Below are positions 12,777-45,247 of a stretch of 64,000 nucleotides of DNA, in pieces (the first letter of the stretch is position 1; each line of letters opens with the position of its first letter). The notes under the pieces were generated by a model, which was not told the origin of the DNA, made no database searches, and saw only the letters and a list, made by a program, of their open reading frames with translations. This DNA comes from Paragordius varius (lineage: Eukaryota > Animalia > Nematomorpha), in the NCBI GenBank assembly GCA_964247055.1, contig OZ176054.1:1426001-1490000 (forward strand), written 5' to 3'. The position numbers were made by a program, and so were the translations under genes.

Positions 12777-15700
12777 ATGGCTAGTAACTTAGTTCTTCAT
12801 ATATTTGCCTTGATATGTTTCACCGAATTAATGATACCGGGATTGTCGGAATTTGTCGGTAAATACGAAATTCGTCAAATTTTTAAATCATAAATATAAT
12901 GTTTTTTTACTTTCTAGTTTATACCGACTTGGATGCTGGAACCTTTAAATCTATTCCAACGAGTACATCTATCACTTTAATTTTCATATCTTATGTTTTC
13001 TGATTAATATATTACTGATTATTTATAGCACTGCAATTGTATGAAAATCAAAAAGGTAAACAAATGTGTAAAACTTGAAATAATTTGAAACATTGCATTA
13101 AATTCCGTTTTTTCTCGAATACTGTTAAAATGAAGCGTACAAATCGTGAAATATAATAGACAAAACGATTAAAAAATATTAATAACATCAAAATAAATTT
13201 ACACCTTATATGAAACGAACGGCAGATTTGTTCCATTAATAAGTATTTTATAATAGGAATGTTAGGCCAAATATTAATTTATCAAACCATATTTTTAGTA
13301 AAAAATTATTTGAACGAACAAATATAAACTTAGCGATAGAAAAAAATCTTAGCTGGCAGTATACTTGTATAAATTATATATACTATTAAAACCAAAATAT
13401 GAAAAACAGTTAGGTACAAAAAATAATTCATAATGGTGTGAACCAATCATTTTAATCATGTTTACACATTTACAAATATAATTTTTTCATAATCTGAATG
13501 ATGATAAAATAACTAATTAAATATCAATATAAATTTTAGTTTTTTTTATATTGAAAATTATAGATAAAAGTCGTAATATAACCCCATTTCCCAAAAATAC
13601 AAATATAAATCAATCATTTTTTAGATATTATAATGGCAAAAAATTCATTTCAGTGTTGTTAAAATATTTTCCAGCCCGTTGCAAACTTAAAATGCGCATA
13701 CATATTTTTAAAACACCGATTTTTTTCCAATTATATTTTAACGTGTCCCTAACACTCAATCTATCAATGAAACATTGTGTGACAAAATATTTTCAAATGT
13801 TTTCAAAAATACAAGATAATTTTTTAATTTGTCCGATTTGTAGAACATATGTTAAAATGCTTTATCAATTAATATCGCGATGAGTTGGAATTATTTAAAC
13901 AAAATCTAACTATCAATGGTTATAATTGCATTTTATTTAGCATTTTAAAAACAAAATTTTGAAATATATTTGATAACTTAAACGTTTTTTAAGACTTAAT
14001 TTTCAATATATATATTATAGAGTTAATGGAAAAAGGTAATGTTATCTCTTAATTTTTTTCTTAAATAAAAATTAAAATACGGACAAAACGTGATAATTTT
14101 TTTCAAAAGACAACCCTATTTTTTTAAACCAAAATTTATCCATTAAAAATCATTTAATCACAATCAAAAATATAATTGATTGTGTTACCAATTTACATGT
14201 CTATTTTATGCAATTTAAAACAATTGAATAAAACAAACATTTATTATGGTTGTCTTTTATTAAAATATTATTTTACGTTTTGTCCGTATAATTTTTACTG
14301 TAAAATATAATTTTATATTATAGTCGATCAATGGAACACTTCTCTCAAAAGTATGTTATATTATTGCTAATTGAAAATTAAATATTTGCCGTAGTTATAA
14401 ATTTAATAAATTTATTTAAATTAGTAAACGAGGATTACATTATGCCCCTTCGTTATGAGATTTATTCACTCGAAAATCGAAGTAGATTTTTTCTTTTTCA
14501 AATTATTTTTAATTATTTAAAATTTTATATATTTTTTATTTAATTAATTTTTCCTCAAAAAAAGATATACAATGGTTTCCGAATCAGGTATAAACTTATA
14601 ATTTCAGGATACTCCTTGCTAAATTATTGTTTTAAATTTATTTTAAATTGTTAATGATGAGTTTTTGTTCCAACAATATATGTGATATTCTATGGCAAAT
14701 AATTTAACATATAATTTTCTAGTCCATTATTCAATCAAGTTTATTTTATTTTTTATTTTAAATTCTTTTAAATAATAAATAGATATTTATGATTGATTAA
14801 TACGTTTTAATTATAATTATCTAGTTTACAATTATTCCGATGCCGTTTTGGATGATTTAAGTAAAAATTGGGTTTTAGATATAAGTTGAGCAAATATTAA
14901 ATATAGTAAAAATTTAAATTATACAGACAAAATGTAAAAACATCGAAAGACTATTTCATACTTTTTAAACCCAAATTTTTCCTATAAAATTAATTGTTTA
15001 CAATTGTAATTTAGATCTTATTTCATACTTTGCGCAGTATAATGGTTTAAAAAGTAGAAGCGGTTTTAAAAAAATATTTGTCTTTATGTTTTTACGTTTT
15101 GCCTGGATAATTTCAAATTTTAATTTGTAATTTAACTAGTTGAAGATCGGCACAAACTGAAAAGAAAATCACGTTGTCGAACTTACACGTTTGAAAGTAA
15201 ATATTAATACCATTTACAGCTCAAATTCACCCTCGAACAATTCAAATTGTCCCCTAAAATAAATTGTGTGGTTTTGAATATTAATAATTGCCTATATTAT
15301 TTTACATTTTTATCAAATGAAATTTCGTTTAAAATTAACGTATTACTGAAAAAATAATAAACTATGCTACAAAGAAAAATATTTCATATTAATAATTCTT
15401 ACCCCGACACATAAATATTTTTAGGGTGAATATGAATTGTTCGAGCGCGAATTTGAATTGTTCAGAAAATTATGGTGTATCTGAACATTGATTTTTGCGC
15501 CATCCATATACCTATAAATTATTTTTTAATTTTTGATTTTTATATTAATTTTTTGCGCATAACTTTAAATTAGCATTGCATACAAAAATTTTTTTAATAC
15601 ATTTTAATTATGATGGGATATCTCGATAAATAAATTTGTATACTATAAATTTTTTAGAAAATCTAACCAGTGAGGGAATGATTAATGGCTCCCTTGGTAA

Positions 15701-24721: not shown

Positions 24722-27700
24722 AAATGTCACTAATACAATTTATGTCATTACTCATTCGAGATTAGGAAAAAAGAGACTTTAAATACTATAATATTTACCT
24801 GAATAATTATTTTTTTTTATTGTTATTTAGTAAACGAAATCTCGCTACTATATGGTAATATAATATATTTTTAAATAAATATCTCATGTAAATATACCTA
24901 AATGACAACAATATATAGATTATAATGCTGACATGCAAAAGGAATATGATCTCTTGATCAAATACCCCAACCCTCAAAGTACAGAAAACAAAACTTGTTA
25001 TTATATGACGTTTGGGCGCAACATTAACAAATCATTGCCTAACTATATTTCCAAACGTGATGGTTAGATTTTTACATTAACTTTTGCTGCTTTGAAAAAA
25101 GATTAGATAATATTGAATTGAAAATTAAATTTATCGAAATTTTAAAAATTCTATAAATTTTCCATTAAATCCCCAAAAAATGTATCCTACATCGTAATTA
25201 AAAACCTTTTTTTATTAAAAAAATATTTTAAACCAAAATTCGATTATTTGATAAAGTTTTCATATAATAATTATATTTTTTTGTGTAGATCTTCTTGCCA
25301 GTTTACGAGAACTACGCACTGAAACTCTTAAAAAAGGTATGCTCTTATTTTTGTTTTAAAATTAACTAAATATTTTAATTTATTGTCAATATTGTAGAAT
25401 TACCCTATAATTATATGGTTCGACAAACGACCTATCTCGGTAAAAATTTAAATTTTAGATAAACTTTTTTCAAAAATTAATTTTGTGCATATTAATAGAT
25501 CAATCCTTACCCAATCTTTGCCCCATTCAAGCTATTGAAGAGATACTGCCATCGAATAAGACATCAAATAAAGGTATGTTCATTCACTTTTTCTTCACTT
25601 TTGAATAATTTAAATTTTTTTGTTCAGGACTTAAATTCTTCTTATATATCTAATAAAGTAGTTTCAGAAAAACCAGCAGCTCAAAACATAAATGTCACTG
25701 TGAATTCCACAAAAGGTCCATATAATTTGGATCCAATACCCGAACCTCATATACTTAGTAAGATACTAACTGGAATATTTTTTATTAAATTTGCAGAACT
25801 GCGCAGTTTGTACTATTTAATTAATATTTATAGAAAGTTAAATAATTAACTGATAAAAATATGATTATGTTTATATAAACTATTGTCCAGCTTTTTTACC
25901 AATTGTTGTACTTGAAACTAAGTGTATGTTCAGTTTAATTTATTTTCCCGATCGATATTTAGATGGTCCAATTGAATCAAAAACTACGGTAGCCTTGCCA
26001 TCTATATTACCAAAAGACCAAGCACGGAGTAATATTATAGTATAAACAATTTTAAGAGTCTTGGTTTTCTAATAAATATCAAAAGTTCCCAAACCATTTT
26101 TGTAGTTATAACAGGGCAATAGGACGTTTAATAACTTTTCATTATAAATTAAGTCGAAAACTATGTTTATGTAGTTTATTTAAAAAGTATAAACATAATT
26201 AGTATTTTTCCTGGGGATTTTAACCTGTCAAAAGACGGTATGACTCTTATCAATAATGTCCTCTACGGTCAAACCAATCAATTATAAGACAAAAAAAATC
26301 CATTTTTCTATTAAATGTGTTTATCTTCTTAATTCAAAAATTATTTGAAATATCTCCTTCTGGAAATTTAGCCATAATTATTCCTTAATTTTTGATCCTT
26401 TTATTAGTTTAAGTTATGTTAAATTTCTACGTTTATTCGTTTAGTTGTGATTGCCGGTAATTTGAATCAGATTATATTATGTTGTCGTTTAGAATTATAA
26501 TTGAATGTCACTCTACTAATAAATAAATTTCTTTATTTTCCAGGGGCGACGCTTACAGGCATAGCTGGTAAATACTATTTTTTGCTCTATATTCCTAACA
26601 ATTACATAACAGCATTGCACTATATTTATGAATATGGAATAGAGATGTACAGTCATGTAGACTTTATATTGTTAAAGATTTACTTTTTTTCGTTAATTGG
26701 GTATTAATATTTGGTAAAGAATATAAAAACAAGAGCAATATGGTATTACCATATCATATTCTTTAAAAAAGTAAAAAATGAAGGGGAAGGGCGTCGGAAA
26801 TCTTTGGTAAAAATGAAAATACACTAACTACTAACCCTTCACTTAAATTTGATGGATATTTTTAATGTTAAATTTTGAGAATATCATAGCAATTTATGTT
26901 AACATTTGGAATATTGTTGTTACGTAATTAGATGCGGAATTTTGTGGGTTTTTATCTTTAATAATAATTTAATAAATTGTAAAATGGGTATTTTATTATT
27001 TATGTTAAATTCAATAATTACTATTTTTCAACATGATAAATACCTGTATTAATCGATATTGGTATTTTATATGGTTGTTATTAGTAATTAAAATACAGGT
27101 TATATATTTGTTAAAATTTAAGTAGATTTTGGATTGTTTTTGTTTTTATGTTATTCATTGTCAATTTTTATCTATTGACATTTTAATCAGGTAAAATTGC
27201 GGTTTTTAAATTTAGTCAAATTTAATTTTTTTGTTTTTTATTTAACATTGTTAATTGTAATTAATTACATATTGTGATTTTAAAATTACAGGTGAAAATT
27301 GTGGTTTTTAATAAATTTAGTAAAATTGAATTTTTTTGTTTAGGATTTGCATTGTAATTTCAAAAAAACTGGTAAAAATGGCGGTTTCAAAATTTTTTTT
27401 ATTGTTAATTGTAATTAATTACATATTGTGGACATTTTAATAATTACAGGTAAAAATTGCAGTTTTTAATAAATTTAATAAAAATTGAGTTTTTGTTTTT
27501 TAGGATTTGCATTGTTAATTGTAATTAATTTATTTGGTCATTTTAATAAATACAGGTAAAAATTGCGGTTTTTATTACTAATTGAATAGCAATAAATGTC
27601 GATATCTGTATATCCCAATTTTTACTGTAATATTTATGTATATATAGGTGTGGGTGTGGCAATCGGGACAGCGACCGGAACGGCTGCAGCCTCAGCTGGA

Positions 27701-28859
27701 ACCGGTCTTGTGGTTGAAGGGGGAACTGCTTTGGCCGCTGGGGCTGAGACCGCTTTTGAATCTCTCACAGCTGGAAGTGAGACCTCTTTAGAATCTTTAA
27801 CGGCTTCTTCAAGTTCTTCAAGTTCATCCTCTTCCTTTACGGCGGCACTACAAGCCAACAGAGTCATCAGCAAAGGAACTGCCAAAGCAGTTGCATCTTT
27901 CGCCGTGCCCCCGACTGCGTATGGGGCTTATCGAGCCTCCGCTCATTCCTCCCATTCTGAAGGCGGTCCTTCTCATATCAGTAGTTCGGATGTACATACC
28001 CATATTCACACTGAAGTACACGAGGAACAACCTGAGGGCCCTGTCACCATTAGCAAGTTACAACCTAACCCAAATTCTATACGGATTGAACATGAAAGAC
28101 TGCTTGGTGGAGGGACAGACGGTCCCAGTTCTCCGAGCAGTGAAAGTCACTCATCGGATTCTTCGCAAACTCAGCATCAATTCAATGTTCCTTCCAAAAA
28201 ACGACCAGCTGAGGACAGACCACAAGGACGTAAGTCATTTTGAAATAATATTTTGAAAATTTCATTAATATTTTTTATACCCTTTTAGCTGAACCGAAAT
28301 CACAAAGATCAGGTAAAATTTTGTTAAACTGGAAAATTTAGTTGTGAAAAAAAATTAAGAGTTATACTCAATTAATTACTAAACATAAAATACCAATTAT
28401 TTTATAGATTCCGAATTATTGGAATCCTTACTTTCCCGAAAAAGATCCCGGACTCCAGTTAAAGCCCCTAAAAAAACTGTTAACCCTGCCTCTGCCCCCA
28501 CCCAAATACATGAGCCTTCGACATCTTCCGTTGTCCAACCCTCTCATCCTAATGCTGCGTCTAAACAGTTTGAGAGGCCTGCACAATCTACTCGAGATTC
28601 CAATAAACCCAGACAACAGGTATCGAAACTTTTGCAACAACCAAATGTTTTAAAAGCCTCTAAACCAAGGCGGCCACCAACCTCAAATCGTGTCATTCCT
28701 GAAACTGTGGAGTCACCGAGCATCCCAGACACGCCTGATACACCAAGAACCCTTTCCTCGAATCCAGGTTTATTTTATAATAAAATAATATGGCTTATTA
28801 CAGGGGTCTCCAACATGGGTCTGACAAAAATAGAAAATATGATCACCAAGAAAATTTGA
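12777..28859 (+). CDS. Secreted/surface multi-repeat protein built from symmetric phase-1 small exons (5' part of the MEG-like locus)
   Basis: Exon 12777-12858 encodes the signal peptide MASNLVLHIFALICFTELMIPGLSEFV. About 45 GT-AG exons follow, mostly multiples of 3 (e.g. 12918-12962, 13029-13055, 15841-15948, 20042-20176, 24919-25062, 25662-25757, 25963-26028, 27648-28229, 28289-28312, 28408-28767). Three domain copies carry EN(K/R)TCYY, Y.Y..R..TYLG and CPI motifs, followed by a Gly/Ala hydrophobic stretch and a Ser/Pro-rich region. A possible stop lies at 28857-28859 with AATAAA at 28911. A few junctions (14.4-14.6 kb, 26.0-26.4 kb) are unresolved. Confidence 0.8.
14062..14300. mobile_element. 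MITE family D (pogo/Tc1-like, TA-CAGTAAA...TACGGACAAAACG TIR)
   Basis: Inverted ends AATACGGACAAAACGTGA / TTACGTTTTGTCCGTATAATTTTTACTG-TA, with an internal AAAAGACAACC / GGTTGTCTTTT pair. Confidence 0.75.
14904..15128. mobile_element. MITE family D, degenerate
   Basis: TAGTAAAAATTTAAATTATACAGACAAAATG ... TTTACGTTTTGCCTGGATAATTTC. Confidence 0.6.
15208..15477. mobile_element. MITE family B
   Basis: TA-CCATTTACAGCTCAAATTCACCCTCGAACAATTCAAA ... GGGTGAATATGAATTGTTCGAG...ATGG. Confidence 0.75.
16071..16345. mobile_element. MITE family D
   Basis: TA-CAGTAAAGCAATTAAAATTATACTGACAAAACGTAAAAAT left end; degenerate right end ...TTTCGTCTGCGTAA. Confidence 0.65.
17634..18008. mobile_element. MITE family B (TA-CCATTTACAGTTCAAATTC TIR; 21-bp repeat TTGAACAATTCAAATTCACCC)
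   Basis: About 5 tandem 21-mers on the left arm, about 3-4 inverted 21-mers on the right arm, TA-flanked. Confidence 0.85.
18042..19267. mobile_element. ~1.2-kb foldback (near-complete palindrome) element, Tc1-like right terminus
   Basis: Arms ~18081-18632 and ~18685-19250 are reverse complements (e.g. CTCATGAGATAGCTTATGACCAGCGTATTCATTTGCCGC / GCGGCAAATGAATACGCTGGTCATAAGCTATCTCATG) around a ~50-bp spacer. The right end reads TA-CACAGTGTGCAAAAA on the minus strand. Confidence 0.85.
23974..24199. mobile_element. Chimeric A/B MITE
   Basis: The left end is family-A TA-CCATTTGCACTTCAAGAG. It is followed by the family-B repeat CGAACAATTCAAATTCACCC and a B-type right end TTTGAATTGTTCACGGG...AAATGG-TA. 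Confidence 0.6.
24228..24690. mobile_element. MITE family A, degenerate
   Basis: TCATTTGCACTTCAAGAG left end after a (TA)n tract. The internal GATACGGTTTC...AGTTGATG...AATAGGT matches the 45801 copy. Confidence 0.55.
27085..27575 (+). repeat. Intronic tandem repeat, ~6 units of 78-106 bp, each centred on (T)ACAG|GTAAAAATTGCGGTTTTT
   Basis: AG|GT junctions with GT at 27099, 27191, 27292, 27450 and 27556; a TG|GT variant at 27372. Confidence 0.8.
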
Positions 28860-29129: not shown

Positions 29130-30131
29130 ATGAGAACTTGCGTCCTGTGGAAATTTTAGAAGAATCAAACCAGCCTGGAAGTATGCTATAATTCTAGTTA
29201 AATGACTTATCACATTATAATACTTCCCGAATATATAAAACGTAAACGAATTAAATACAAAGAGTCTCTATATTATCCACATTTATTTGCTTTATAGAAC
29301 ACCAAAACGTTAAAGATTGTAAGACTTTCATATATTAATTATTTTGTTTAGAGTATCAATTATTTGTATAAATAGTTTTAAAAATGTTAAAATATTTAAA
29401 ATTAAAAGTTGATCCTATATATATATATATATTGGCTTAAAACCAACATTTTTCCAAGCAAACGCAACATTATTTCAAGCAAGCTTATTTTTTCATTCAA
29501 ACGTACTTTTTCAAGAAAGGACAATTGAATTGTCTTGAAATAATGTTGGGTTTGCTTGAAAAAATGTTGCTGTTGACTGAAAAATGGTATGTATGTCATT
29601 AATTTTTAATAACTATGAAAAAATTTTTCAGAATTTTTGAAAATTAATTATTAATACTTGAGTGCCTATTACTAAATGGTTGTATTTTATATATTTCATA
29701 TATTATTTTTTATATACATTCAAGGGCTAAGAAGTAATTATTACTGCTAATATATTTGTGATGGATACAGTAACGAGAGCTATTAATAATTTCAGCTTTT
29801 ATAAATAGCTTAAACTTAAAGTGTAAAATGTATTAAATGTCAGTTGTCATGTATATTTTTATTTTCAATATTTGAATTGATAAATAAAATTATTGCAACA
29901 TGACAATGCAAATAAAAAACCCTTTTACCCATTTAAAATTCTGAACATGCCAATAATATCTCTCGTTAAATTTTACACAGATTGAATTTTGATAGAAAAT
30001 CAATTTTAAATAATTTTTTAATTCAAATATAGTAAAATTTATTTTCATATTAATTAACTTTATATTAATGTTTTACGAAATCCAAATATACAGGATCTCA
30101 CGGTATTCCTGGTAAGTCACCGTTAAATATA

Positions 30132-30168
<37 letters not shown>

Positions 30169-33100
30169 GTAATAAATATTTAATAAATATCCCTTTGACT
30201 AATTAATTTTCATTTCACAAAACCAGTATCTGATGAAATTTTACCCACCGAAAACGGTAATTTTACAATAAATATTGTATTCATCTTATATAGAGTAAAA
30301 ATTGAAATTATACGGACAAAACGTAAAATATAAAATATTGTTTCTAAAAGTAATCATATTTTTTAAAAACTTTATTTATTTAAACAAAACTCATTGTTTT
30401 AAAATGCAAAATATTTAATAAAAATGTATATTAGTAACACATCAAGTAATATTGTGCAATCGTAATTAAATTATAAAAAATAATGGTTTAAAAAAGTATG
30501 GTTGTCTTTTGAAAAAAGATATTAGTCTTATATTTTCCGTTTTATCCGTATTCAATTTTTATGTATTTTTGTGACATCATTTGTTATAATGAAAATTCAG
30601 CTAAAGCATTTAAAATTGTTCCACTTTTTTTACAAAATGCATAGTTCAACGTCAGGAATCAGCCATACACAGCGATAATGGTATTTTTTATAATTTTGAA
30701 ATTTTCCAAAATAGGTTCTCATTACTTATTTTTGCTTATTTAGGAGGATCACCTTCAAGTATTTATTATTAACAACAACAGCACGAATATCCCAAATCTA
30801 ATGATCAATAATTTGATATATTAATTATATTAAATATAGAGATTTGATTAGCTACATTTTACAAATAATATAAAAATGCCCAGGTGTCGTTTTAATTAAA
30901 GTGCCTTTTGTTTGATCAAAAAAATTCATTTTTCTTGGAAACCGTTTTTAACAATGAATAAGGCATATATTTTGTGTGACTCTTCCGTGCCGCATCAAAT
31001 ATTTATAAAATAAGTGGTTTAAATATTTGTTAAATACCTAAAATGCTACACATGGCTAACAGGAGCGACGCACTGTTTTGACGATTAACAATCACTAATG
31101 TTTATTTAATCTTGATAAGTAAAAAGTAAATACTCTAAAATTAATTTTACATGGTTATTTTAGCAATTGAATTGGAATCACAATCGAATTCCCATTCTAC
31201 AAGTATAGCTGATTATTTTATATCTTATTTGTGATCGATAAATAATTATTTTATTTAACTTATTTAACAATGAACCTCAGCTCTCTTTTAATTTCATATA
31301 TTTTTGCAAAAATTTTAAATTTTATTTATATATCTTATACTCCTTATTTAGTGGTCGTTTCATCAGATCCTGGTAAATATTCTTCTTTGAATAATATTAT
31401 CATAACCTCTACAGATCCTTGCAAGCGATTCTATTAAAACTCCATTTAATATATAATAACCTTTATCATTAAAAATATTATATAAATGTACTAATCACAC
31501 AATCTGGAGTCATAGTAAATGTATATTTTTGAACTATAATACTAAGATCCCCATACTTTAGGTTAAAGGGTATACGATATACATTAATAATTTAAATTAC
31601 ACAAACAAAACGTAAAAATTAAAAAATATATTTCATAAAAAGACAACCATATTTTTAAACCTTTATTTTTAATACTCGTTTGGTACAATTGTATCACACT
31701 CTGTTGTTTGTTAACACATACATAATATCACAATCGTTAGCATAAACATTATTTAGAAAATTTAAAATATGGCTCTCTTTTCATAAACCATATTTATTCT
31801 TTTAATTTTATGTTTGTCTAAAAATAATTTTGATTTTTAATTTACAATTAATTGTATAAAGAATAAAGGGATATTGTTTTAGATCGCTAATTTTGTAAGG
31901 AAATAATTTATTTTGTCTAAATAACAATTATAAAACATATGCAATTATGATTAAAAAATTACTTCCATTACACTTTTCAAAAATAACATATACAGTTTTG
32001 AATTCCATTTAAAACAAATAAATGATTTTAAAGGTCATTAATTGGCCAATTTTGTTGTAACAACATTATAAAATTCGTTTAGAATAATAAAACATATGTT
32101 TGGCCGCATTGAGATGATAATTATATCAAGTTTTAAATTCCTTTTTGGGTCCAATACTCCAAAAAAATAAAGTATTATGCAAGTATAATCTTTTATTGCC
32201 GAATTGCATAGAGCATCACATAAATTCCAATTGAATCATAGTTGATTTATATGGTATTTTGAAAGCAACAATGTTTGAGAATCAGGAAACTAAAATATTA
32301 GTTACTACTCCGGTTTCAAGTCAAATTTATAGCTCTTGTTTTTCGCATACAAGGAATTTTTCTTGAAACAGGGATGGACTGTATCACTATGGGTTTCGAT
32401 AATTTTAAACCATTTAATTTTAAACAACTACTGGTTTTCCTTTATTAATCGTACGGTCCATTCTCAAAAGGACCATAAAATCCTGATAAATTTTTGCGTT
32501 TGATGTATTAATCTTTATCGCTACCTTATAAATGAATGATTTAAAAAAATTTCTTTTAAAAAATACAGATGGAAATCCCGATTCCATTCAAAGTACTGAC
32601 ACAATCACACAAATTCATTCGCAGGATAGTAAGAATATATCTAATTTTTTTAGCAGTCAGACTCTCAGATACAAATTCCCCACGCGGTATTTTTAAAAAA
32701 ACTAAACATATTTATACATATATATAATGTGCAATATAGGTTCAATGTTTATAATTTGCTTATATTAGCATGCATAGGAAATTTACCAGTTTTCACCGAA
32801 AAAAAATTGACAGCTAAATTAGAACTAAACTAAAATATTATAGCAGTCAGCAGTTTCGAAAATAGTAATAAAAATTTATTGGTGAATATGGCTCAATCTT
32901 TCGAACAGGGGTGCATAAATATCGGCTTCTTTTATAATTTCTGGTTTTTTAAGCCCACTACATCTTCTGAATAATGGTAAATTTTGGATTAAAATTCTTT
33001 TTTTAACATTTTTAGAGCACTTTTGCATACCAAAAAAGCGTGTTGAGCATCCCTACTTTAAATAAAATATGGTGTTTTTAATAGTTTAGGCATAAAAATA

Positions 33101-34268
33101 TGTTAATTTTAATAATAAAGTTTTTAACATGATGAGTTTATCTACTAAACCATATATTTTATTTCTCCCATCTCAGAAACCAAACAAATTAATCATATGT
33201 AATAATATTCGCCGGATTTTTCAGTCAAGAGTGCGACCGCTAATAAATTTTGAATATTTTTAACACTTTATTACGTTTTCAAGTTTGTATTTTGGGGGGA
33301 GTTTTATCCTAAGAGCCATACTAAATAAGCTATTTGGAAAAATGTTTTTTTAAATTTCTGACAACTGTATCAAAAAAAAGTTAAATTTTAAAGTGTTCTT
33401 ACACTTGGAGCTTACCAACGGTTAAAAAACGCTAGCATTTAAAAAATTTACTATATTGTTCAAAAAACTAAGGTTAAATATTTACTTAATTTTCATAAAA
33501 TTGATTGCGATTTCTGTTTTAGAAATTTAAAAAAACACGAAAAAAAATTGGTTATAGTGTAATATCCACAATACATTTTATTTAAAATAAATGAATATTT
33601 TAGAGATCGGTCCAATATCTTATATATATTATGTTATTCAAAAGCTAGGAAAATTTTTATCTTATTTTCTTTAAAAACATCTGATTTTTATATTTCGGTT
33701 AACTTTACAAAAATAAATTTTTTATTACCTCTAATATATCATTTAAACTTCAAATTGACCGTTGTTCACCCTTGAACAATTTAATTTCACCGTATAAATT
33801 TCTATTTTAATATTAAAATTTACCTATATTTTTTTAAAAAAACTTTGTTTAACATTAAAATGATAGTACTGAAAAAATAATAAACTCATAAATTATTTGT
33901 CGAACACAATTTTTTTAATTTAAATTGCTCAAGGTGAACTCTGATTGTTTAAGGGTGAATTGGAATCGTAAATGGTATTAAAGGTTTAACCATTTTAATT
34001 AAACGAAAATTCTATAAACAATTCCTAAAAACAATTGACGAATCAGTTTATTATTCTACTTTGAAACAAACGCCTAAAATTATTTGGAATAACTGGTAGA
34101 TTTCCTATTTGAATAATATAAATTTACTATTTATTAATGCAACTATATTATGATAGATTCATCTGTATCCATACACTCGCAACAAAGTAGAAATAAAAAT
34201 AATAATAAAAATATTAATTATAAAAACTTAGCTGAAATCGTGGCATCACCAGCTCAAGGTTAGTGTTT

Positions 34269-34324
<56 letters not shown>

Positions 34325-37016
34325 TTTAAAAATTGGGAAATTATTTTTTTATCAGTAAATTTGGCCGTATACTTTATATTTTTATTTAAATTGAGGAAAA
34401 ATTATTTATTTATTAAAATTTTTTTCTATCCATAAATTATTTTTAATGGTGTCTATAGATAAAAATAAAATATACATAACATTATCGGTAGGTCTCCAAG
34501 ATCCCCCCAATCAAATCAAATATATGTCTATATAAAAAATTCTTTTTTTAGAAAATTACAATTTTATAATTTTTATATAATTTTTTTGGCTATACAGCAA
34601 ATAACCAGCATTCACGTGATGTTGCAGATCCCCTACAAAATATCCAGTCTATAGAAAGTTGCATTTTCATATTTTAATCTTAATTAGCTCTGATAATATC
34701 TGATACCGATTCACCACGTCGTAATATTTTTTATATATTCAAACATATTTTATTGGAAAATCTAATATTTTCTCCTATTAGTTCCGTCATACCCATCTAT
34801 TCACTCGCAACAAAGTAGAAATTAACTATTTTTTTACTTTTAACAATAAATTAAAATTATATACTATTTAGCCTTGATCAGGGAGTCACCAGCTCATGGT
34901 AAACTTTTGAATCCAATATTATATTATTTGGTACAGGTTATTATATAAAAAACGATCAGACATTTATGAGAAAGAATATTTAACACAACAAAATTACAAA
35001 TAAGATTTGACTTAGAGTGGTTAGGTTTTTCTTTGTGGAATAGTGTCCTTAAAAGTAAATAATTTGAAATTGATTGCGCGATGAATCTCTTATATGTTAC
35101 AGCATGCTATTTTTATTTTTTGTTGAAGCGTACATCTGATTATTATGCCAAAAGAATCTTACAAAATTCATTGAAATTTAAACAGTTGTGGCTTTAAGTA
35201 TATATGTATATGATAGATAGCATAATTACGAATTAATTTTAGCATTTTAATTAAGTTATGAGCTAAAAAGATACATTATCAATAGATAAGCCTTTATAGA
35301 TACGCATTGGGGGAAGAATAATATCATTTTTAGAAAAATAGTTTCTATAATCGTATAAATTGCCAAATAGATTATATAGCTAAAATTTGTTGATTATAAT
35401 TTTTGCAGATAAAAAATCGCAAAAACGGGTCAAACCACGCTGCTCGTCAAACATATTTTTTTGGTAAAAGAGTAGTATTTAAAACATATATTTTAAAAAA
35501 GTTCTGTCTTTTCGAAATAAGTCATTGCTTTATTTAACCAAAATAGAAAAGTTAATATATTTTAATCATGAATTTATGTATATATTATAAATTTACAGCA
35601 AGTAATATCCCTTCGCTTCAAGGCTCAGATATACCAGACATTAATTCGATAGAAAGTTGCATTTTCATATTTTAACCTTTATTAGCTCAAAGAATATCTG
35701 ATACGAATTCACCACATCGTAATATTTTCGATATTTTCAAAATTATTTTATGAACTAATCTTTTCTCCTATTAGTTCCATCCTACCCATCTTCTATCCAT
35801 TCGCAACAAAGTAAAACTTAGACTATTTTTTTCTCTTTTAATAAATTATTACTCATTATAATTTTAGCCCTAATCAGGGATTCCCCAGCTCATGGTAAAT
35901 TTTCAACAAAATATTTTATTTTATTCTAAACAATAAAAATCGATCAGATATTTAAGAACGCGACCGACTTTCAATGAAAATCAAAATAATTTTAACAACA
36001 TTTTACACAATAATCTGAATGACATTTAAAATTTTTTTTTTAATAATTTAAAAAATGTAATTTAAAAATTATTATTCAGCTATAAAAATATAATTGATAC
36101 TTCAAAAATAATAAAAAATTGGTAAAAGTATTTGTAAGGACAATGTGTGTCGACAAATTTAAGATATGTCTTATAAAATATATGTATTATAATATTAAAT
36201 AGTTGCCAAATGTCAAAAACATACATTTTCAGTAGATATATTGACGTCATATAGCGCACAGGATATAATGTATCATTTTAAAAATATATTCTCTTTAATC
36301 TTATAAATTTGCTAAAATTTTTCAGATTTAAATTTAACTGCTACATGTGAAAAAACGAAAAAACAGTTGTTTCACATTTAAAACAAGTGTGCCCAATTTA
36401 AATTTTCCTTCTATACATTATAAAATCATCACATTCTGTGCTTTTGAAGTCGGGTGCATATAACCTTATTTACCCAAAATAAAGCGTATAGCAATCAAAT
36501 TAATAAAACGATATATTTAAATTATACAGCAGGTAATATCCCTTCGCTTCAAGGTTCAGATATACCAAACATTCACTCGGTAGAAAGTATACATTTCCAT
36601 TTTTAACCTTTTTTAGCTATAAGGAATTCGGGTATTGATTCAAGTCTTAAAATTTTTTATATATTTAAAATTATTAATCTAATCTTTCTCCTATTAGTTT
36701 CATCCCCATCTATTCACTCACAACAAAGTAGAACTTAAACTATTTCTTCATTCAAAAATAAATTATTAATCAATATAATTTTAGCCTTAATCAGGGATTC
36801 ACCAGCTCATGGTAAATTTTCAACAAAATTCCATTTTATTATAAACAATAAAAATTGATCAGACATTTATGGACGCGACCGACTTTCAACAAGAATCAAA
36901 ATAATTTTAGCGATAGGTCCAAATTTTAGTCAAATTATTTAACTTATTGAAATTATAATCTTTAATTCGTAGCAGTCCACACAAAATAAATATCTTGATG
37001 AAATAAAATTTAGCAT

Positions 37017-37047
<31 letters not shown>

Positions 37048-40000
37048 TCCCTAATCTTATAACAAACTTGTACCATTTTTTGATTAACAGATAGAGTAAA
37101 GCTGGAAATTATACGGACAAAACGTAAAAATAAAACGACAAATATTTTTTCTGAAAGAAAACCCTACCTTTTTGTCGTTGTAGGGATAATTAAGAAAGTA
37201 ACAAAAGTAAAAATAGATAAAGTTATTTATTCGTTTTCTAGTCTTTATATAATATTTTTGTGTAAACATAATTTGCATGATTAAAACATCAAGAAACTAA
37301 TGGATATTTTATTTACATAATACAAAAATATAAAAACATAGACTATGCAAATATCACTAAAATTTATATCATACATAAAAAATATAATTAAAATTTGTAT
37401 ATATACACTTGAAGACCCTAATTTTTCCTACACCATTATAATTTTAATTAATACAATTGGTGTTAATAACACTGGACAACAAATTTTTCTGCCACTCGAG
37501 TTTTTTGCATATTACCATCTTTTAACAGTTAATCAGAATTAAATTATAATTTCACCTAAAAATTTTTGAACTTGATTTTTCTGATTATGCGTCCTCTTTA
37601 TCAAAATTTTACTAAAAAATGTTTTGCTTTGAAAATATACAAGAAATGCTGTTTGTAATACATCATTCGAAAGAGTAATAAATACTCTACAAAATGTTTA
37701 CTAAAAGTTTTACCAACAGTTAATATTGGAGTTAAGAAGCGACAAACTTACAAAGCGAGAGCGTTTTCCTAATTAAAATACTTTTAAAAATATTGGATGA
37801 AAATAGCGCCAACTTTTTCTAGATGGCAATGAGTGTTCAAAAACGACAAAAGAAAGTTTTTTTGATTAAATTATTTATTGCTTGTATGTCATTCAAACAG
37901 CCATTTTAAAATTTGTATTTTAAAAAATTACCATCTCATCAATATTATTTTATTTACTTTATTAGGCTTAAAATTTCGAAATTTTAAGACTAAATAAAGT
38001 TTAAGGTGTTCTATAATTTTTTCAACGAATATTTAAATTTACATTTTTAACGATGCATTTTATTATCCACTTCTATAAATATGATAATATAATTTTTATT
38101 AAAAAAGCAAACCAAAAGCTTTTTTTAAAAATTGTTATAAATTTTTATGTGTAACCCTAATAATTATATTAAAATAATTTCTATAATTTTCAAATTTGTT
38201 ACTCTGTAAAAATTATTGACTTATTTAAGGGTTGAAAATATGAACCCAAATAACTTTTAAATCAGATTGATTTGAATAAGAGTTTTTCGCGCTCTTCGAA
38301 TGATATAAAATATAAGGCTCTATATTTAAAACTTTTAATTTTGAAAATTTCATGTTAAATCGGAGATCGATAAATCCTAATAAAATTCTTAGGTGCTAGA
38401 CCAATTTTTTTAAGATATACTATTTATGTACTTTAATGACATAATTTAAATTTACAAGAATGGTAGTTAAAAAAGTCAAATGTTGTCTAGTATAATTTAC
38501 AGATCTATTCCTTGTTAACCACAACAATAAAACATTGAATGGATTGCCTTTGAAAAGTGTGTCTATTTAAAAAATATTTTTCTTTATATTTTTAGGATTT
38601 GTTCGTATAATTTTAATACTGTAATAAAAAATTTAAGATTTTACTGTATGATCTGAATGATACAAAAAAATGTAATTAAAAAATTAATATTCTAGCGATG
38701 AAAAATTAAATTGGTACTTAAAAAATTGGTAAAAATAAGGTAAATGTGTGTCGACAAATTTAACATATGTTTCATAAAATATATGTATAGTACTATATTT
38801 CAATATTTGCTAAATTCCAAAAGCATACATATTCAATAAGGGATTATTCAGGTCAGATGGCGGGTAGGGGCATAAATGTAAAATTATAAATTCTCTATAA
38901 ACTTATAGAATTGCATTATAAAAAAAGAAACAGTTGTTTTACGATTAAAACAAGTGTGCCCAATTTAACTTTTGGCTCTAATCAACATTATTGAATCATT
39001 ACCTTTTGTGCTTTTGAAGTCGGGTGCATATAACCTTATATACCCAAAATAGTAAAGCGTATGCTATATTACCAACAAATTAATAAACGATATATTTATA
39101 TTACAACAGCAAGTAATATCCCTTCGCTTCAAGGTTCGGATACACAAGACATTTATTCGATGGAAAGTTTGAATTTTCATTTTTAACCTTTTTAGCTATA
39201 AGAAATTCGGATATCGATTCACCACGTAAATTTTGATATTCATGTTATAATTACAAATAAATATATTTTTGTCAGATCCCTCAAACAACCCATCTATTCA
39301 CTCGCAACAAAGTAAAAATTGAATTGTTTTATTGTATCTGAATTAATTAATAATAAAAAATTATTTTAGCCGAGATCTTAGATTCACCTTCGCATGGTAA
39401 GTAATTGCTTTCAAAAATATAACTATTTTATATTTTAATTGATGAACATATCTTAAAAAATTATCATCAGATGTTTTTGAATATGGACATTCTAACACAA
39501 AAGTGATAAATGGTTTAAAATATAAGACATTTCAAAATCAGCATCAGATAACTGCAAATATATCACAAAAATATTAATAATGTCCCTGTTTTAATGGATG
39601 CAAAATCCATAAAAAAGACTTATTAGTTAGCACTCCATTATCCTTTAAGGTGGTTATATATCCCGAGCGATTTGAAATTCGAATATCTTAAAAAATATAT
39701 AAGGTATTATAAGCCGAATTTAAAAATAGTTTTTATGGAACATTATACAAAAAAATTTAAAATTTTGAAAAAATTCTCATCTCAAACTTTTTTGCGGCCG
39801 TTTTTTTTCTAAAAATTTTTGCTGGCTAAGTGCAACAGGCAAATATATGTATATGAAAACAAGAAAATGTAAACAATTAACTTTCAGAATATTTTGGCTT
39901 CATTTTACCAGGAAAACTTTATTTTGTGTTGTAACCGTGTTTTGGAGCTGTCCCAGTTTTCGGCTCTACAAGTCACAAAAAATATTAGTTTTTTTCTCAT

Positions 40001-43000
40001 AAATGAGAAAATTTTTGATTGTCATAAAGTTCCTTAAGATTTTATGACGGAAAACGCCATCTTTATATTTAATAACAACATAATATGGAGATTATTATTA
40101 TTAGACTACCTTGGCAATTAAAGTTATAGTACCTTCTATCAAGCAATAGGCGGCTTTAAGAAACTGTCATCTTAAAATTTTTGTTTAATAAATCACGTAT
40201 TGTGTCTTCTAATTGCAAAGGTAGCTGAATTGTATTAATCTCCATATTATGTTGTTATTAAATAAAATTTTTAACTTTTATAACTGTTTTTTTTTTACCG
40301 AAATTAAAACTATTACAAAAGGTAAACTGACACAAAATGAAAGGGTAAAGTTTTAAAATGTAGCCCCACCTTTGAGTTATAAGAATATATAAAATTTAAA
40401 TCCCGTGACCTATTACTAAAATTTGAAATTAAACAGCAAAACTAAAAATAAACAAAAATACAATCATATATCATAATTTTGAATAAGGTCGAAAATAGGA
40501 ATTCGACATCTAAATTAGAAATACCCTTAAAAAATAATAAAATTGTTATTATATAGTTAATGTTGCAAAATTTAGATTTTAAAAAATGTGGTCGTCTTTT
40601 CTAAAACGTTGCCTTTATACTAATAACTGTTTAATTCTCTAATCTAAACAACGAAAAATTTGTATATTCAATAATAATATTGGAATATAAATAAGTAACC
40701 CCAAATATCACCTCAATAATTTAACTTACTTTTTAATGCGTTATAGATTTTAATGAATTTGATTATTATTAATATAACTTATATTTTATAAATTATTATA
40801 AACTTTTTGTGCTCTTTAGAAATTAATTTAAATAAATAACATAATATATAATACTTGATCTTCTATAATATACAATTATAGATATTGGACCTAGCACAAG
40901 TAACAGTTTAATATCTAAAAATAAATTTTCTATTTTCTATTCATAATTAATTAGGTCGACAAAATCAACACGTTTCACACCGCATTCAAACGGAAAATTC
41001 AGGTAATGTATAGTCGCAAAAGATACTAATATTTTTATTAAAATTAATATCTATTTTTAATTTTTGTAGAGCCTCAACCAAGCACAAGTAAGACATCTAA
41101 TTAATTATTTTTAAACATTTGTTTGATGATTACAATATTTTTTTAGGTCAACAAAACGCCGAAATTCAGGAAGAAAATAGGGAGACGGCACGAACATGTT
41201 ATTTTTGTTTAATTACTAGCTCAATTTTTAAATATAAATGATTTAAATTATAATAATAATCTAATTTTCATTTAGTCCGAACAAACATAGATGAAAACGG
41301 TTTGACATATATTATTGATATGTAAAAAAAGATATAACAATATTACATAATTTTCTCTTCATTAATGTCTATTTTAATATTAAAATAATTGGGCTCTATG
41401 ATTATCGGAAAATACCGATATTCAAGGGTGCAATTCGGATTTTGCCAAATTTTTTTAAGCTTATCAATATATTAGGAAAAATGGGTTAGAAATAGGCTAA
41501 ACGTCCATTATTGTCATTAAAAAATTTCCATTCAAAATCTAAAAATGGCAAATTAGAATTAAACGTAAAAAAAACTGAAAATCGATCGACTTTTAAAATT
41601 TTTCACAAATTCAGACCTGGTTATATAAAATAAAAAAATATATATGAGCTTTTATTAGCATATAATACCCAAAAAATTTTTATTAAATGTGATTCGTTTG
41701 CCTATAAATATAAAGTATTTAAAGCATATTATTTTACAAATTGTTCCCTATAATATCATATAAATATATATTACCGTTTTTGGGTCTAAATATTTAGAAT
41801 TAATGGCTCAAGCTTACCGAGAGTTTGAACAAATGAGGACTAACAGTAACTTTTAAATAACTAAACTATATTTATACAATCCTTGGAAAAGCGAATAAAC
41901 CTATTAATATTATGCGCATTTAGTATACAATAGAATCAAAATCAAAATGGATGAATGCATGATTGGTAATTATAATCATGTGTAATGATCACCAACCAAT
42001 ATATCTAAATTAATTTTATAATTTAGAATTGCAAGATTGGATGAGAAGTACATCATATATTTCTAAAGCAAACTCTTGTATTATAGTGTGTAATAGGGGT
42101 TAGCCCTTGTACGTTTTGGCAAACTCAATTGTTTCATAGAGATGATGATGGGCTCTTTTAAAGTCCGAATAAAATTAGGTGTCAAACACGCCATATAAGA
42201 GAAATAAATATAAAAAACAAAAGAAAAAACAGCGGTATAGTTTTTTGGCTCTACCTTTACAACCAAAAAGCGAAAACGCTAAAATACCATATGTTTGTAT
42301 TATCAGCCAGCAAATATTTTGTATAACCATTTTTCTAATCCAAACCTAAAACCCGATAAAACTCCAAAACACTAATTTAAATTTTTGCATATCATTAAGT
42401 TTTGAATTTATCATAAAAACAATAAATAATTTAGCTCACAAAGAAAATTTTTGAATTGAGAGTTAATTTGTGTATCATATAATCCATTCAACATTACGAG
42501 GTACATCTTACACCTGATATACTATTTATAGAATTGAAAAATAAAAATACACAAAAGTTTTTCTATCGGGAAGTTTTTGATGATTTTAACATGTTAAAAT
42601 TAAGCATACCACAAAATCGGTCTCTTTCAAAAATTTAAATTTTTAAAGCGAGCTCTCTTAATATCATGAATTTAATACAAACATATGGTGCATTATTAGT
42701 ATTTTGAATCAAAATTTATAGCCAAAATAAAAACTGTTTTAAAATTTTTATTGTAAAACATTTATTTCTCCATCTGATTTCCATTTTTTGCCTTTAGAGC
42801 ACATCTACTTTATTTGAAAATTGAGTTTCCAACGCGAGATATTCTTGGAAGGGACAAATTAGTTGTCGTTGATCTTTTAAATTTAAATCCGATAAAAATT
42901 GGCGGGCTTATGTGAAAAATAACAAAAGTCGGTTAAAAACTAAGTTGTTTAAAAAACTGCCATTATATATTTTATTAAATAAAAAAATTGTCAAAGTGAG

Positions 43001-44539
43001 ATAATATAAATAAATTTAGATGTTTGGGTTTAATTAATTATGTATTTTAAAAGTATACTAAATTATGTAAAAATCTTGTTATAGGGTTAAAATACTGAAA
43101 TATCGCCCCATTTCAAAATTTTAATTTACTTTAAAGTTTAAAAATATATATATATATATATATATATCGATATAAGCTTACTAGAAAAAAAAATTTCTCC
43201 AACTCACCATGTGAAATATAGTTATTTACAATAGGAAGGAATCAATTCTTTACTTTATATAATTAGCACCATTTCACTATTTTTACTGATATTTATCAAA
43301 AAATATAAATTATTATTTTAAAATTTACTAAAATGCCATTTTTTATATTATGAAAGCTGATTTCGCAAAAAGCCAAAATCTTTGATGTTATAATATGTTA
43401 AAAATTGTAAATTATTCCATAGATTTAGCCCTAAACATTCGGGATATTCCAAGTAAATAATTAAAACTTATTCTATTTAATTTTGTTATCTGGTTTAATA
43501 TATGATTTACTTTTGAATTTTTAAAATAAAATAATAATAATAATAATAACCTTAACAATCACTTTTTATCGATGATATATTTATTGGGGTTTTTAGTTTA
43601 ATAATTTAAAATATTTTTTCTATTAGGATTGAAAAGCATTCTACAAAGTACGTAACACCTAATATTTTTTTATATAATACTTTTGTAATTTTTTTCACGA
43701 GTGAATCAACAATTCTATTAGTAAACTAAAAATAAACTGATTTTTCAACATTTTTTCCGCCCTATAATTTTTATCTGAATTAACCTGTTACATCCCAAAA
43801 TATTTTTAACTGTTTCTATTTAATAATTAAATGTATTTTTTAGCATTGAAATATCTCTTTTTTTTGTCTTGTTCGCATAGACTCGATATAATTAATCTGT
43901 TTAAAAATGATTTAATTCTTTCATAAGCTTTATTTCCAACAAATTATAAAATTCTGTTCATATAAAAATTATTTAAATTTTTGAAATTACCCATTTTTCC
44001 ATCAAATTCCATTATATATATATATATAATATTTATGTGTTCAAGAATATAAGCAATTGATAGAGGGTAAAATAATTTTGTAATTTCTTTCCATGAGATG
44101 GAATAATAAAATCTTTAATTTTTAGAATTGCATGTCTCTGAATTACCATTTCCACGTATATAATGCCATTTGTATAATTCTAATTCAAAATTTATAACAT
44201 CTATTATATATATCTGATAGAATACAATAATTATGGTATTAATATAATTTTGCTATACATACAACATACAAATTTCAAAAGTTTTATGACTGTATGGTAT
44301 AAAATAATTTTTTTAGAATATACAGGATTCCTAAATTGGCTAACGGGTAACATCAATACTATTTAAGATAAAAATTTTTACAAATTAATTTAAAAAGCCA
44401 AAATTAATGAAATTTCTTTTGGAATTTATTAGAGGCCGAACGCATGGAACTCGGACGTAAAAATACCTTTTTTAATTATTTCTGCCGAAATTGTAATATT
44501 TTAAATATTTTAGCCGTTACCGCATTTAACATTCATTGA
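29130..44539 (+). CDS. Micro-exon-rich coding region (3' part of the MEG-like locus or a separate gene)
   Basis: About 40 GT-AG exons of 15-60 bp, all multiples of 3 and open in phase 1. Examples: 29130-29180, 30094-30111, 30227-30256, 30645-30680, 30744-30758, 32569-32628, 32654-32686, 34157-34186, 34232-34258, 34598-34657, 35599-35655, 36530-36586, 39110-39166, 39370-39396, 41798-41845 and terminal 44514-44539. The C-terminus reads ELMAQAYREFEQMRTNIYNRIKIKMDECMIELQDWMRNLALNIRDIP...RFLNWLTEAERMELGPVTAFNIH*. Confidence 0.78.
29430..29590. mobile_element. Short degenerate MITE family C copy
   Basis: CAACATTTTTCCAAGCAAACGCAACATTATTTCAAGC ... GTTTGCTTGAAAAAATGTTGC...AAAAATGG-TA. Confidence 0.6.
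30293..30562. mobile_element. MITE family D
   Basis: TA-GAGTAAAAATTGAAATTATACGGACAAAACG ... GGTTGTCTTTT...CCGTTTTATCCGTA. Confidence 0.7.
31582..31845. mobile_element. MITE family D, degenerate
   Basis: AAATTACACAAACAAAACGTAAAAATT...AAAAGACAACC left arm; TTTTATGTTTGTC right arm. Confidence 0.55.
33737..33977. mobile_element. MITE family B, degenerate
   Basis: TCATTTAAACTTCAAATTGACC...CCCTTGAACAATTT ... AAGGGTGAATTGGAATCGTAAATGG-TA. Confidence 0.6.
34269..34321. repeat. Compound (CA)n(TA)n microsatellite
   Basis: Directly visible. Many other (TA)n tracts occur in introns (e.g. ~17492, 23550, 24198, 24688, 30136, 43144, 44668, 63022). Confidence 0.95.
37094..38621. mobile_element. ~1.5-kb insertion bounded by family-D termini
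   Basis: Left TA-GAGTAAAGCTGGAAATTATACGGACAAAACG; right TTTGTTCGTATAATTTTAATACTG-TA. It interrupts the intron of cassette copy 4, whose flanks match the uninterrupted intron of copy 3. Confidence 0.6.
40066..40264. repeat. Small inverted-repeat element
   Basis: TTTAATAACAACATAATATGGAGATTA...CTACCTTGGCAATTA / TAATTGCAAAGGTAG...TAATCTCCATATTATGTTGTTATTAAA. Confidence 0.7.
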
Positions 44540-44667
44540 TGTGTCCGTATATCGATGGGATTATATTAATACTTTTCTATCAATGCATTTTTTTGTTGAT
44601 ACAACATGTTGCGGGTTACTACAGGGATTTTTTGTCATCTAACATGAAATAAATTTTGTTATTCATC

Positions 44668-44700
<33 letters not shown>

Positions 44701-44730
44701 AGGATAGTTTAAAGACTGTAAAAAATATAG

Positions 44731-45247
44731 ATGACTGCAAACATTTCAAAATTAATACAAAATATGACGCTCGCTAGGTCGGAATATCGTAAAATGCCTT
44801 CTAAAAATATCTTGCTAAAGAAAGTATTTATCCTGTATCGTGGCATTTATCAAATAAGATCAACGATTCATGGAATCCAAATAATTTTACATAAGGCAAA
44901 CATGCACATCACTAAAACCATTCGGTTTTTTTCGGACCCAAAGTTTAAGCAGAAACTATGTCATGTTGAAAAATAATTCAAATAAATGCTATGAAATACA
45001 CGAGGATCTTAAAAACGTATTTTATTTACCGGAATCTAATAAGATTTTTTCTCAAAACCAGACATTAAAAACCGAAAATTTAAAATTAATGCCTCCTTCA
45101 AACATTTCATTCAATGATCATTATGATACAATTTGTAACATAGTACTGTCACAAAGTGAATTCATTAAACATTTAGAATTAGAAGTTGAACGATTAATGA
45201 ATGAAATTAATAGGTTCCAAGAACTACTTTTAGCCGACAATATATAA
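44731..45247 (+). CDS. Two-exon small protein (~148 aa) with C-terminal coiled coil
   Basis: Exon 44731-44822 plus a 73-nt GT-AG intron plus exon 44896-45247 fuses the two listed ORFs in frame. The C-terminus is TICNIVLSQSEFIKHLELEVERLMNEINRFQ. Confidence 0.55.

Follow-up and report, generated by a model that had tools for sequence, protein, structure and literature searches.

The cassette array

We analysed a 64,000-nucleotide stretch of the Paragordius varius genome (assembly GCA_964247055.1, contig OZ176054.1, positions 1,426,001 to 1,490,000 of the forward strand), referred to here as the window, which has a GC content of ~25% and belongs to an assembly of 110.6 Mb in 44 contigs. Between window positions 32569 and 39396 the + strand carries five diverged tandem cassettes, each made up of four micro-exons designated A to D, and these cassettes appear to form the repetitive middle of a single long + strand gene that extends from ~12777 to ~44537 and in which every placeable intron is of phase 1. 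Exons were enumerated as intervals between AG and GT that have a length divisible by 3 and are open when read from their third base (the phase-1 frame), and all 20 cassette exons are flanked by AG and GT, are of phase 1-1 and have lengths that are multiples of 3. An earlier note on this DNA had proposed a protein growing by five-fold tandem duplication of such a cassette, and the exon lengths that it gave were recovered exactly (A, 60/60/57/57/57; B, 33/33/33/27 or 15/30; C, 30/33/36/30/36; D, 27 in all five copies). The cassettes are listed below, with introns in the order A-B, B-C and C-D.

32569..34258, + strand: cassette 1, with exons A 32569-32628 (60 nt), B 32654-32686 (33), C 34157-34186 (30) and D 34232-34258 (27); introns of 25, 1470 and 45 nt
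34598..34898, + strand: cassette 2, with exons A 34598-34657 (60), B 34688-34720 (33), C 34782-34814 (33) and D 34872-34898 (27); introns of 30, 61 and 57 nt; an alternative B donor gives a 30-nt B
35599..35894, + strand: cassette 3, with exons A 35599-35655 (57), B 35686-35718 (33), C 35775-35810 (36) and D 35868-35894 (27); introns of 30, 56 and 57 nt; source of the peptide unit quoted in the earlier note
36530..36811, + strand: cassette 4, a recombinant copy, with exons A 36530-36586 (57), B 36617-36643 (27), C 36698-36727 (30) and D 36785-36811 (27); introns of 30, 54 and 57 nt; B donor GTCTTA, and an alternative internal B donor that gives 15 nt
39110..39396, + strand: cassette 5, with exons A 39110-39166 (57), B 39196-39225 (30), C 39276-39311 (36) and D 39370-39396 (27); introns of 29, 50 and 58 nt; D donor GTAAGT

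Cassette 1 is the most diverged copy; its peptide keeps the family motifs SD-T-N-SP, SIHSQQ and SP-x-Q, and its exons A and D are matched by counterparts in a paralogous copy of the gene. Comparison of the cassettes with one another by blastn gave E values of 1e-24 to 1e-80, indicating homology far above chance, and blastn together with segment alignments showed that adjacent cassette exons are mutually homologous and all of one symmetric phase class. The genomic unit that is repeated head to tail consists of a cassette of ~0.3 kb and a spacer of ~0.65 kb (~0.93-1.0 kb in total), the spacers being homologous between units, and from cassette 2 on the start-to-start periods are 996, 931/917 and 2580 nt. 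Growth to five copies by tandem duplication of a four-micro-exon cassette, as proposed earlier, is thus borne out by homologous copies and a conserved unit. The long spacing between cassettes 4 and 5 is mostly due to an insertion in the intervening intron:

37106..38613, strand not assigned: 1.5-kb insertion bounded by inverted repeats, in the intron between cassettes 4 and 5

The arms of this insertion (37106-37150 and 38569-38613) are 45-nt inverted repeats that are 87% complementary, and copies of the arm are also found at ~15064-15121, at ~30286-30350 and in the paralog.

In a DNA search covering the whole assembly, the cassette turned up nowhere except at this locus and in the paralog. 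Tandem Repeats Finder run on the window did not report the cassettes, because the repeat period exceeds its limit, and the list of open reading frames (ORFs) contained no meaningful ORF across them. Rfam and ARAGORN searches over the window returned zero structured RNAs and zero tRNAs.

Paralogous copy, reading frame and selection

The whole locus (12100-48400, 36 kb) is collinear with a second copy that lies 61-63 kb downstream (G000:C5 1,501,376-1,532,449, loci L008-L012), at a start-to-start offset of ~63 kb that falls to ~58 kb near the 3' end. The two copies are ~70-84% identical over the introns, rising to 92-97% over the long exons, and the open frames are kept in both. Cassette content differs, the window having five full cassettes and the paralog one full and three partial cassettes:

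Paralog cassette 1': A (60 nt) and D (27 nt) only
Paralog cassette 2' (p2): A (60 nt), B (33), C (33) and D (27)
Paralog cassette X' (pX): A (33 nt, via a new acceptor), B (30), C (36) and D (27)
Paralog cassette Y' (pY): C (36 nt) and D (24 nt) only

No trace of B or C above chance was detected in 1'. The 13 cassette exons of the paralog are all of phase 1-1 with lengths divisible by 3, and both AG and GT are kept in each retained exon. An element made of 21-bp repeats in inverted arrays is inserted in the B-C intron of 2' (L011 809-1147, equivalent to 94809-95147 in extended window coordinates); the window contains several elements of this type, one of them at 17621-18026 (~17.6-18.0 kb), and 21-bp arrays at 46.3-47.3 and 60.2-61.6 kb may be related to it.

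Across the 20 cassette exons of the window, the phase-1 frame contains 0 stops in 229 codons, as against 11-21 stops in each of the other five frames. The GC content of 41.6% in cassette exons compares with 16.1% in the short introns, and the step coincides with the predicted boundaries. Minimum numbers of changes per codon position are 29/20/51 for all five copies (chi-square p = 0.0005) and 18/15/31 for copies 2-5 (chi-square p = 0.034), a periodicity that the introns do not have. The ratio of nonsynonymous to synonymous divergence (dN/dS), calculated by the Nei-Gojobori method (NG86), is 0.25-0.5 among the window cassettes; for cassettes paired between the window and the paralog dN is 0.114 and dS is 0.534, a ratio of 0.21, and synonymous and nonsynonymous differences (Sd:Nd) stand at 27:25, compared to 12:40 expected if the sequence were unconstrained (p = 6e-7). 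These data indicate that the cassettes are real coding sequence, read in one frame, whose peptide is under purifying selection. The earlier claim of selection on the frame is upheld, and is extended to the peptide, by the sole open phase-1 frame, the excess of third-position changes and dN/dS values of 0.2-0.5.

The pattern of length change points in the same direction. Gaps in the exon alignments are all of 3 or 6 nt and those in the introns are of 1, 2, 5, 8, 9 and 11 nt, and in a hand tally from the alignments the gap events divisible by 3 were 6/6 in exons versus 2/12 in introns (Fisher p = 0.0015). Since the copies align with one another at the acceptors of A to D and at the donors of A, C and D, length differences in A, C and D reflect internal indels of 3 or 6 nt rather than choice of boundary; in exon B it is the donor that has moved, by 3 or 6 nt. 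Taking both loci together, we count at least seven independent exon length changes, all of them frame-neutral (chance ~5e-4), so that the rule of exon lengths changing only in steps divisible by 3 holds for the window and for the paralog alike.

The further suggestion that the introns drift freely was right for length, as their gaps are not confined to multiples of 3, and does not extend to a faster change in sequence. Identity among copies 2-4 is about equal in exons (75-82%) and short introns (73-79%), and the short introns of paired paralog cassettes differ at 16% of sites, the same as exons overall. The cassette exons evolve no slower overall than the introns, and their changes are shifted to synonymous sites.

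Each cassette encodes ~47-51 residues, and the five together encode 249 residues (747 nt). Over the 229 complete codons the peptide contains 22% Ser, 13.5% Ile, 10% Pro, 9.6% Gln, 8.7% Asp, 6.6% Asn and 5.7% His, with Ser, Thr and Pro together making up 35%; it includes ten Ser-Pro dipeptides and lacks Lys, Phe, Cys and Trp altogether, a striking feature for so AT-rich a genome. Conserved in the nine cassettes of both loci are the motifs S-D-[TI]-[DN]-S-P in exon B, P-S-I-[HQ]-S-Q-Q in exon C and S-P-x-H in exon D, and exon A follows a looser pattern (N-x-P-S-[LI]-Q-x-S-D-...-I-x-S-x-E). Judging from its composition only, the peptide is most likely disordered.

Recombination in the array and the surrounding gene

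The two halves of cassette 4 have different affinities. In a tree of the A-B halves, cassette 4 falls outside the clade formed by cassette 3, cassette 2 and p2 (support 92/89) and is unresolved with cassette 5 and X', and in a tree of the C-D halves cassette 5, X' and Y' form a clade without it (support 93/93). The A-B half of cassette 2 is 89% identical to that of p2, the two being paired at 100/99 support. Over its upstream spacer and exon B, cassette 4 is nearer to cassette 5 (0.85-0.89) than to cassette 3 (0.59-0.80), and from the B-C intron through the downstream flank it is nearer to cassette 3 (0.79-0.93) than to cassette 5 (0.67-0.81). At 169 sites cassette 4 agrees with one of cassettes 3 and 5 and not with the other; here the matches to cassette 5 and cassette 3 number 62:39 to the left of ~36640 and 17:51 to the right (Fisher p = 4e-6, for a breakpoint chosen post hoc), and the best breakpoint, at 36637-36645, lies at the 3' end of exon B4. 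These results indicate that cassette 4 is a 5/3 recombinant, and copy-swapping is thus seen here at the DNA level. The order along the chromosome (3, 5/3 hybrid, 5) is the one that a single unequal crossover would give after misalignment of cassettes 5 and 3, and the odd end of B4 (27 nt, with donor GTCTTA) may be a scar of this crossover. The array accordingly changes through recombination between genomic repeats of ~0.93-1.0 kb that include cassette and spacer.

Erosion as well as growth may have left traces upstream of the array:

30645..30758, + strand: probable older degenerate half cassette, with a C-like exon at 30645-30680 (36 nt), a shortened D-like exon at 30744-30758 (15 nt) and a 63-nt intron between them

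This segment lies 1.8 kb upstream of cassette 1, and its frame and splice sites are conserved in the paralog. When aligned to the C-D segments of the cassettes, it shares the exon ends and shows weak similarity, and we tentatively regard it as an older, eroded C-D half cassette.

The other exons placed in the gene are the following.

12777..12858, + strand: probable first exon, with ATG, a hydrophobic signal-peptide-like start and phase-1 donor GTAAAT
26544-26567, + strand: 24-nt exon, phase 1-1, upstream of the 582-nt exon
27648-28229 (582 nt), 28289-28312 (24 nt) and 28408-28767 (360 nt), + strand: upstream exons, all phase 1-1
40882-40899, 40955-41002, 41070-41087, 41147-41197, 41813-41845 and 42027-42047, + strand: downstream micro-exons, part 1
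43423-43452, 43627-43647, 44126-44155, 44317-44346 and 44433-44456, + strand: downstream micro-exons, part 2
44514 onward, + strand: terminal exon, with a stop after 7 codons (after 6 in the paralog)

The ATG, peptide and donor of the first exon are all conserved in the paralog, and all exons placed between 12858 and 44514 begin with the last two bases of a codon. Outward from the array, the exons placed on either side likewise keep their frame and splice sites in the paralog, with the one exception given below. The N-terminal part of the gene contains three repeated modules with conserved Cys, many N-x-S/T sites and no hydrophobic exon; since no terminal exon or new start was located between these modules and the cassettes, we treat the whole as one gene. 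In the product of the exons at 27648-28767, an uncharged stretch rich in Gly, Ala and Thr gives way to sequence rich in Ser, Pro and Thr, the 582- and 360-nt exons contributing 193 and 119 complete codons. These exons are 92-97% identical to the paralog, compared to ~78% for the flanking introns. Within them, the segment 27651-27846 has a GC content of 55-60%, codes for Gly/Ala/Thr-rich sequence and is 95-98% identical between the paralogs, including at synonymous sites; this greatly exceeds the identity elsewhere in the gene and could reflect gene conversion or some additional sequence constraint. A few candidate micro-exons lie at 29130-31372, among them the C-D-like pair at 30645-30758.

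Downstream of the cassettes, the AG and GT sites and the frame of the micro-exons are conserved in the paralog except at 44317-44346, where the paralog position has no AG. The candidate exons 26235-26267 and 41276-41299 were excluded for want of a conserved AG or frame in the paralog, and the approximate exon positions near 25629-25759 and 44061-44081 were excluded because they have no valid AG/GT pair. The last ~85 residues of the protein (41813-44537) are encoded by nine exons of 21-33 nt and the 7-codon terminal exon, and this product, rich in Leu, Trp and charged residues, resembles a small helical domain. Just downstream of the gene's stop lies a 94-codon ORF with a coiled-coil-like end (44963-45247), and the stretch around it (44606-45261) is conserved in the paralog; this ORF may represent either a small gene of its own or 3' UTR sequence.

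Protein searches were made with exon translations one by one (21-193 codons), the cassette exons, with 9-19 complete codons each, being too short for this purpose. Pfam gave no family for five exon translations in this size range, and the Atlas gave no usable neighbour for the 193-residue exon.

Splicing, topology and relation to known systems

Retention of the A-B intron would introduce an in-frame stop in 6/7 cassettes of the two loci and a frameshift in cassette 1, and in these 6/7 cassettes the stop is a conserved TAA within a branch-site-like TTAAC/T. The A-B introns, at 25-30 nt, must therefore be removed. Independent support for such small introns comes from an HSP70 gene on another contig (L013 1479-1506 = G000:C4:12482546-12482573), which has a 28-nt GT-AG intron with donor GTTAAA and in which the conserved F-P-Y-T / I-K-E-K-N-G-K-P stretch reads through only when these 28 nt are removed; this one housekeeping case indicates that introns of less than 30 nt function in this genome. 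The 54-nt B-C intron of cassette 4 (36644-36697) has no in-frame stop, so that its retention would keep the frame, and of 17 short cassette introns examined across the two paralogs it is the only one that is both divisible by 3 and stop-free.

The weak donors cited in the earlier note (GTTGCA, GTAGAA, GTTTGA and GTCTTA) are all present. Scored against AG/GTRAGT at six variable positions, cassette donors have a mean of 2.7 matches versus 3.36 in 22 other exons of the same gene (p = 0.04), so that donors are generally loose throughout this gene and slightly weaker in the cassettes. The donors of A, B and C score 1-4/6 and precede the internal introns of 25-61 nt (except for the 1470-nt B-C intron of cassette 1), while those of D (GTAAGT, GTTAGT, GTAAAT) are the strongest of the array at 3-5/6 and start the introns of 339-2298 nt that lead to the next cassette. 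The signals that would decide on skipping of a whole cassette are therefore good ones, and this pattern does not favour the earlier idea that the cassettes, through their weak donors, would be open to skipping or copy-swapping during splicing.

Taken together, the data are probably best explained by an all-phase-1 gene with recombining, frame-neutral and mostly constitutive spacer cassettes. Splicing would recognise the A-B introns as tiny introns and the remaining short introns through intron definition, inclusion of the cassettes would be mostly constitutive, and the repeat would serve as a flexible and acidic spacer presenting Ser-Pro motifs in repeated copies, its length and valency depending on cassette number. 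Several observations weigh against this explanation. The cassette exons are known from genomic sequence alone, their function is proposed from composition only, and their overall divergence among copies 2-4 matches that of the introns. The 193-residue exon had no match, not even to itself, at E <= 0.001 among 1.84 billion representative proteins. For the paired cassettes dS is 0.53, compared to 0.14 in the remaining gene, almost four times as high, which may result from mis-paired counterparts or from homogenisation of the rest of the gene. Finally, the uncharged stretch encoded at 26544-27720 could be a weak membrane span, which would place the repeat in the cytoplasm.

The similar divergence of exons and introns, in a genome rich in tandem and dispersed repeats, would also fit a non-expressed segmental repeat in a long intron or in intergenic DNA, its open frame being a leftover or due to chance. 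This appears highly improbable, given the single stop-free frame among six, the sharp GC step from 42% to 16% at the predicted boundaries, the third-position excess with its low dN/dS, the length changes in two paralogs that are all multiples of 3, the conservation of AG and GT for every retained exon in both paralogs and a peptide without Lys and Phe despite a GC content of ~25%. An alternative that accepts the exons as coding takes the array for a generator of diversity, in which weak donors let the spliceosome skip exons or cassettes or join across copies and thus yield many variants. Because all exons are of phase 1-1, skipping would be harmless to the frame and any skip or cross-copy join would preserve it; the poor match of the A, B and C donors to the consensus, the internal 15-nt donor of B4 and the 54-nt intron of cassette 4 that could be retained in frame would all lend themselves to such variation, single exons have been dispensable in evolution (B and C were lost in paralog 1', A and B in Y'), and transcripts of schistosome micro-exon genes (MEGs) are reported to vary in this way (10.1101/2023.06.21.545858). 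However, the D donors that govern cassette skipping are the strongest, the weak donors are mostly those of introns 25-61 nt long, in which splice-site pairing across the intron allows few alternatives, and weak donors are usual across this gene. We therefore consider a diversity generator unlikely, and it is similarly doubtful that the array is a regulated splicing module giving stage- or tissue-specific combinations of cassettes or micro-exons in both paralogs.

A further possibility differs from the constitutive-spacer explanation solely in topology and role, and places the repeat in the cytoplasm, as the tail of a type I membrane protein, with the sequence encoded at 26544-26567 and 27648-27720 forming the span and the cassettes forming an array of motifs for proline-directed phosphorylation or docking. 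The putative span consists of ~30 uncharged Gly/Ala/Thr/Val/Ile residues between an Arg and a Glu and is the stretch of the gene best conserved between the paralogs (95-98% identity), basic clusters follow further downstream, and along with the ten Ser-Pro dipeptides an S-x-x-x-S-P spacing recurs in the B exons. Nevertheless, its Kyte-Doolittle mean over 19 residues peaks at ~1.2 (partly a hand sum across the exon junction), below the usual threshold of 1.6, so that no convincing membrane span was found in the Gly/Ala/Thr-rich stretch, and the acidic residues right after it are contrary to the positive-inside rule. With a signal-peptide-like first exon and no convincing span, we estimate that an extracellular repeat is somewhat favoured over a cytoplasmic one, and a cytoplasmic tail in this specific form seems rather unlikely.

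Textbook cases of internal exon duplication include the PEVK exons of titin and the super-repeat exon blocks of nebulin, and multi-exon repeats of variable copy number include the two-exon kringle IV-2 (KIV-2) unit of human LPA and the Olduvai exon doublets of NBPF. The cassettes resemble LPA KIV-2 and NBPF in that a block of exons and introns with a summed length divisible by 3 is repeated head to tail and changed by unequal recombination. Those units, however, encode folded domains and are kilobases long, whereas the present unit of ~0.3 kb with a ~0.65-kb spacer would encode a motif-bearing linker, and in contrast to LPA KIV-2 the difference in copy number lies between two paralogs of one assembly.

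Genes for disordered proteins tend to consist of symmetric exons that arose by internal tandem duplication (Schad et al. 2013, PMC3632108). The locus shares with this class homologous neighbouring exons, one symmetric phase, low-complexity sequence and duplicated segments that include introns, and it differs in having a unit of four micro-exons of 27-60 nt, introns mostly of 25-61 nt, a very AT-rich genome and one duplication readable as a crossover hybrid, its disorder being judged from composition only. It belongs to the internal-tandem-duplication class of symmetric exons, a known principle applied here to a four-micro-exon unit.

Similarity in gene design extends to two families rich in micro-exons. 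Schistosome MEGs encode small proteins (up to ~190 residues), are specific to Schistosomatidae and are variably spliced (10.1101/2023.06.21.545858). Like them, the present gene has many very short symmetric exons behind a signal-peptide-like exon and is missed by ordinary ORF finding, and most of its coding length lies in these symmetric micro-exons (6-81 nt), the exceptions being the 582- and 360-nt exons. Unlike a MEG product, its protein is not small, as the array alone has 249 residues and the long exons add 193 and 119 codons; it would be a large multi-module protein without relatives detectable in exon-wise searches, with a splice pattern predicted from genomic sequence. In aphid bicycle genes nearly all internal exons start at codon position 2, and megacycle has >100 micro-exons and ~2000 residues (PMC9168663). 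The exon phase class and the many micro-exons are the same here, a likeness of gene design; in comparison with the paired Cys-Tyr-Cys (CYC) motifs that are diagnostic of bicycle proteins, the cassettes have no Cys and the N-terminal modules have Cys-Tyr-Tyr.

Were the cassettes part of a regulated module after all, the gene and its paralog would supply spacers graded in length and in number of motifs, and MEG-like combinatorial splicing would be extended to a third lineage of animals, in a modular secretory protein of large size whose gene also uses introns of 25-30 nt; alternatively spliced cassettes would also offer a compact system for studying how the spliceosome chooses among near-identical micro-exons with minimal donor signals. 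Under the constitutive-spacer explanation, the locus is a clean small example of repeat-protein growth in which the sequence itself reveals the unit that is repeated, the rule that keeps the frame, the selection acting on the peptide and even one product of a crossover. Ordinary ORF calling is blind to such a gene, and gene models must accept exons of 27-60 nt and introns of 25-30 nt. It is a clear but ordinary case of a gene, presumably of the secretory pathway given its signal-peptide-like first exon, that lengthened a floppy Ser/Pro-rich middle by copying cassettes.

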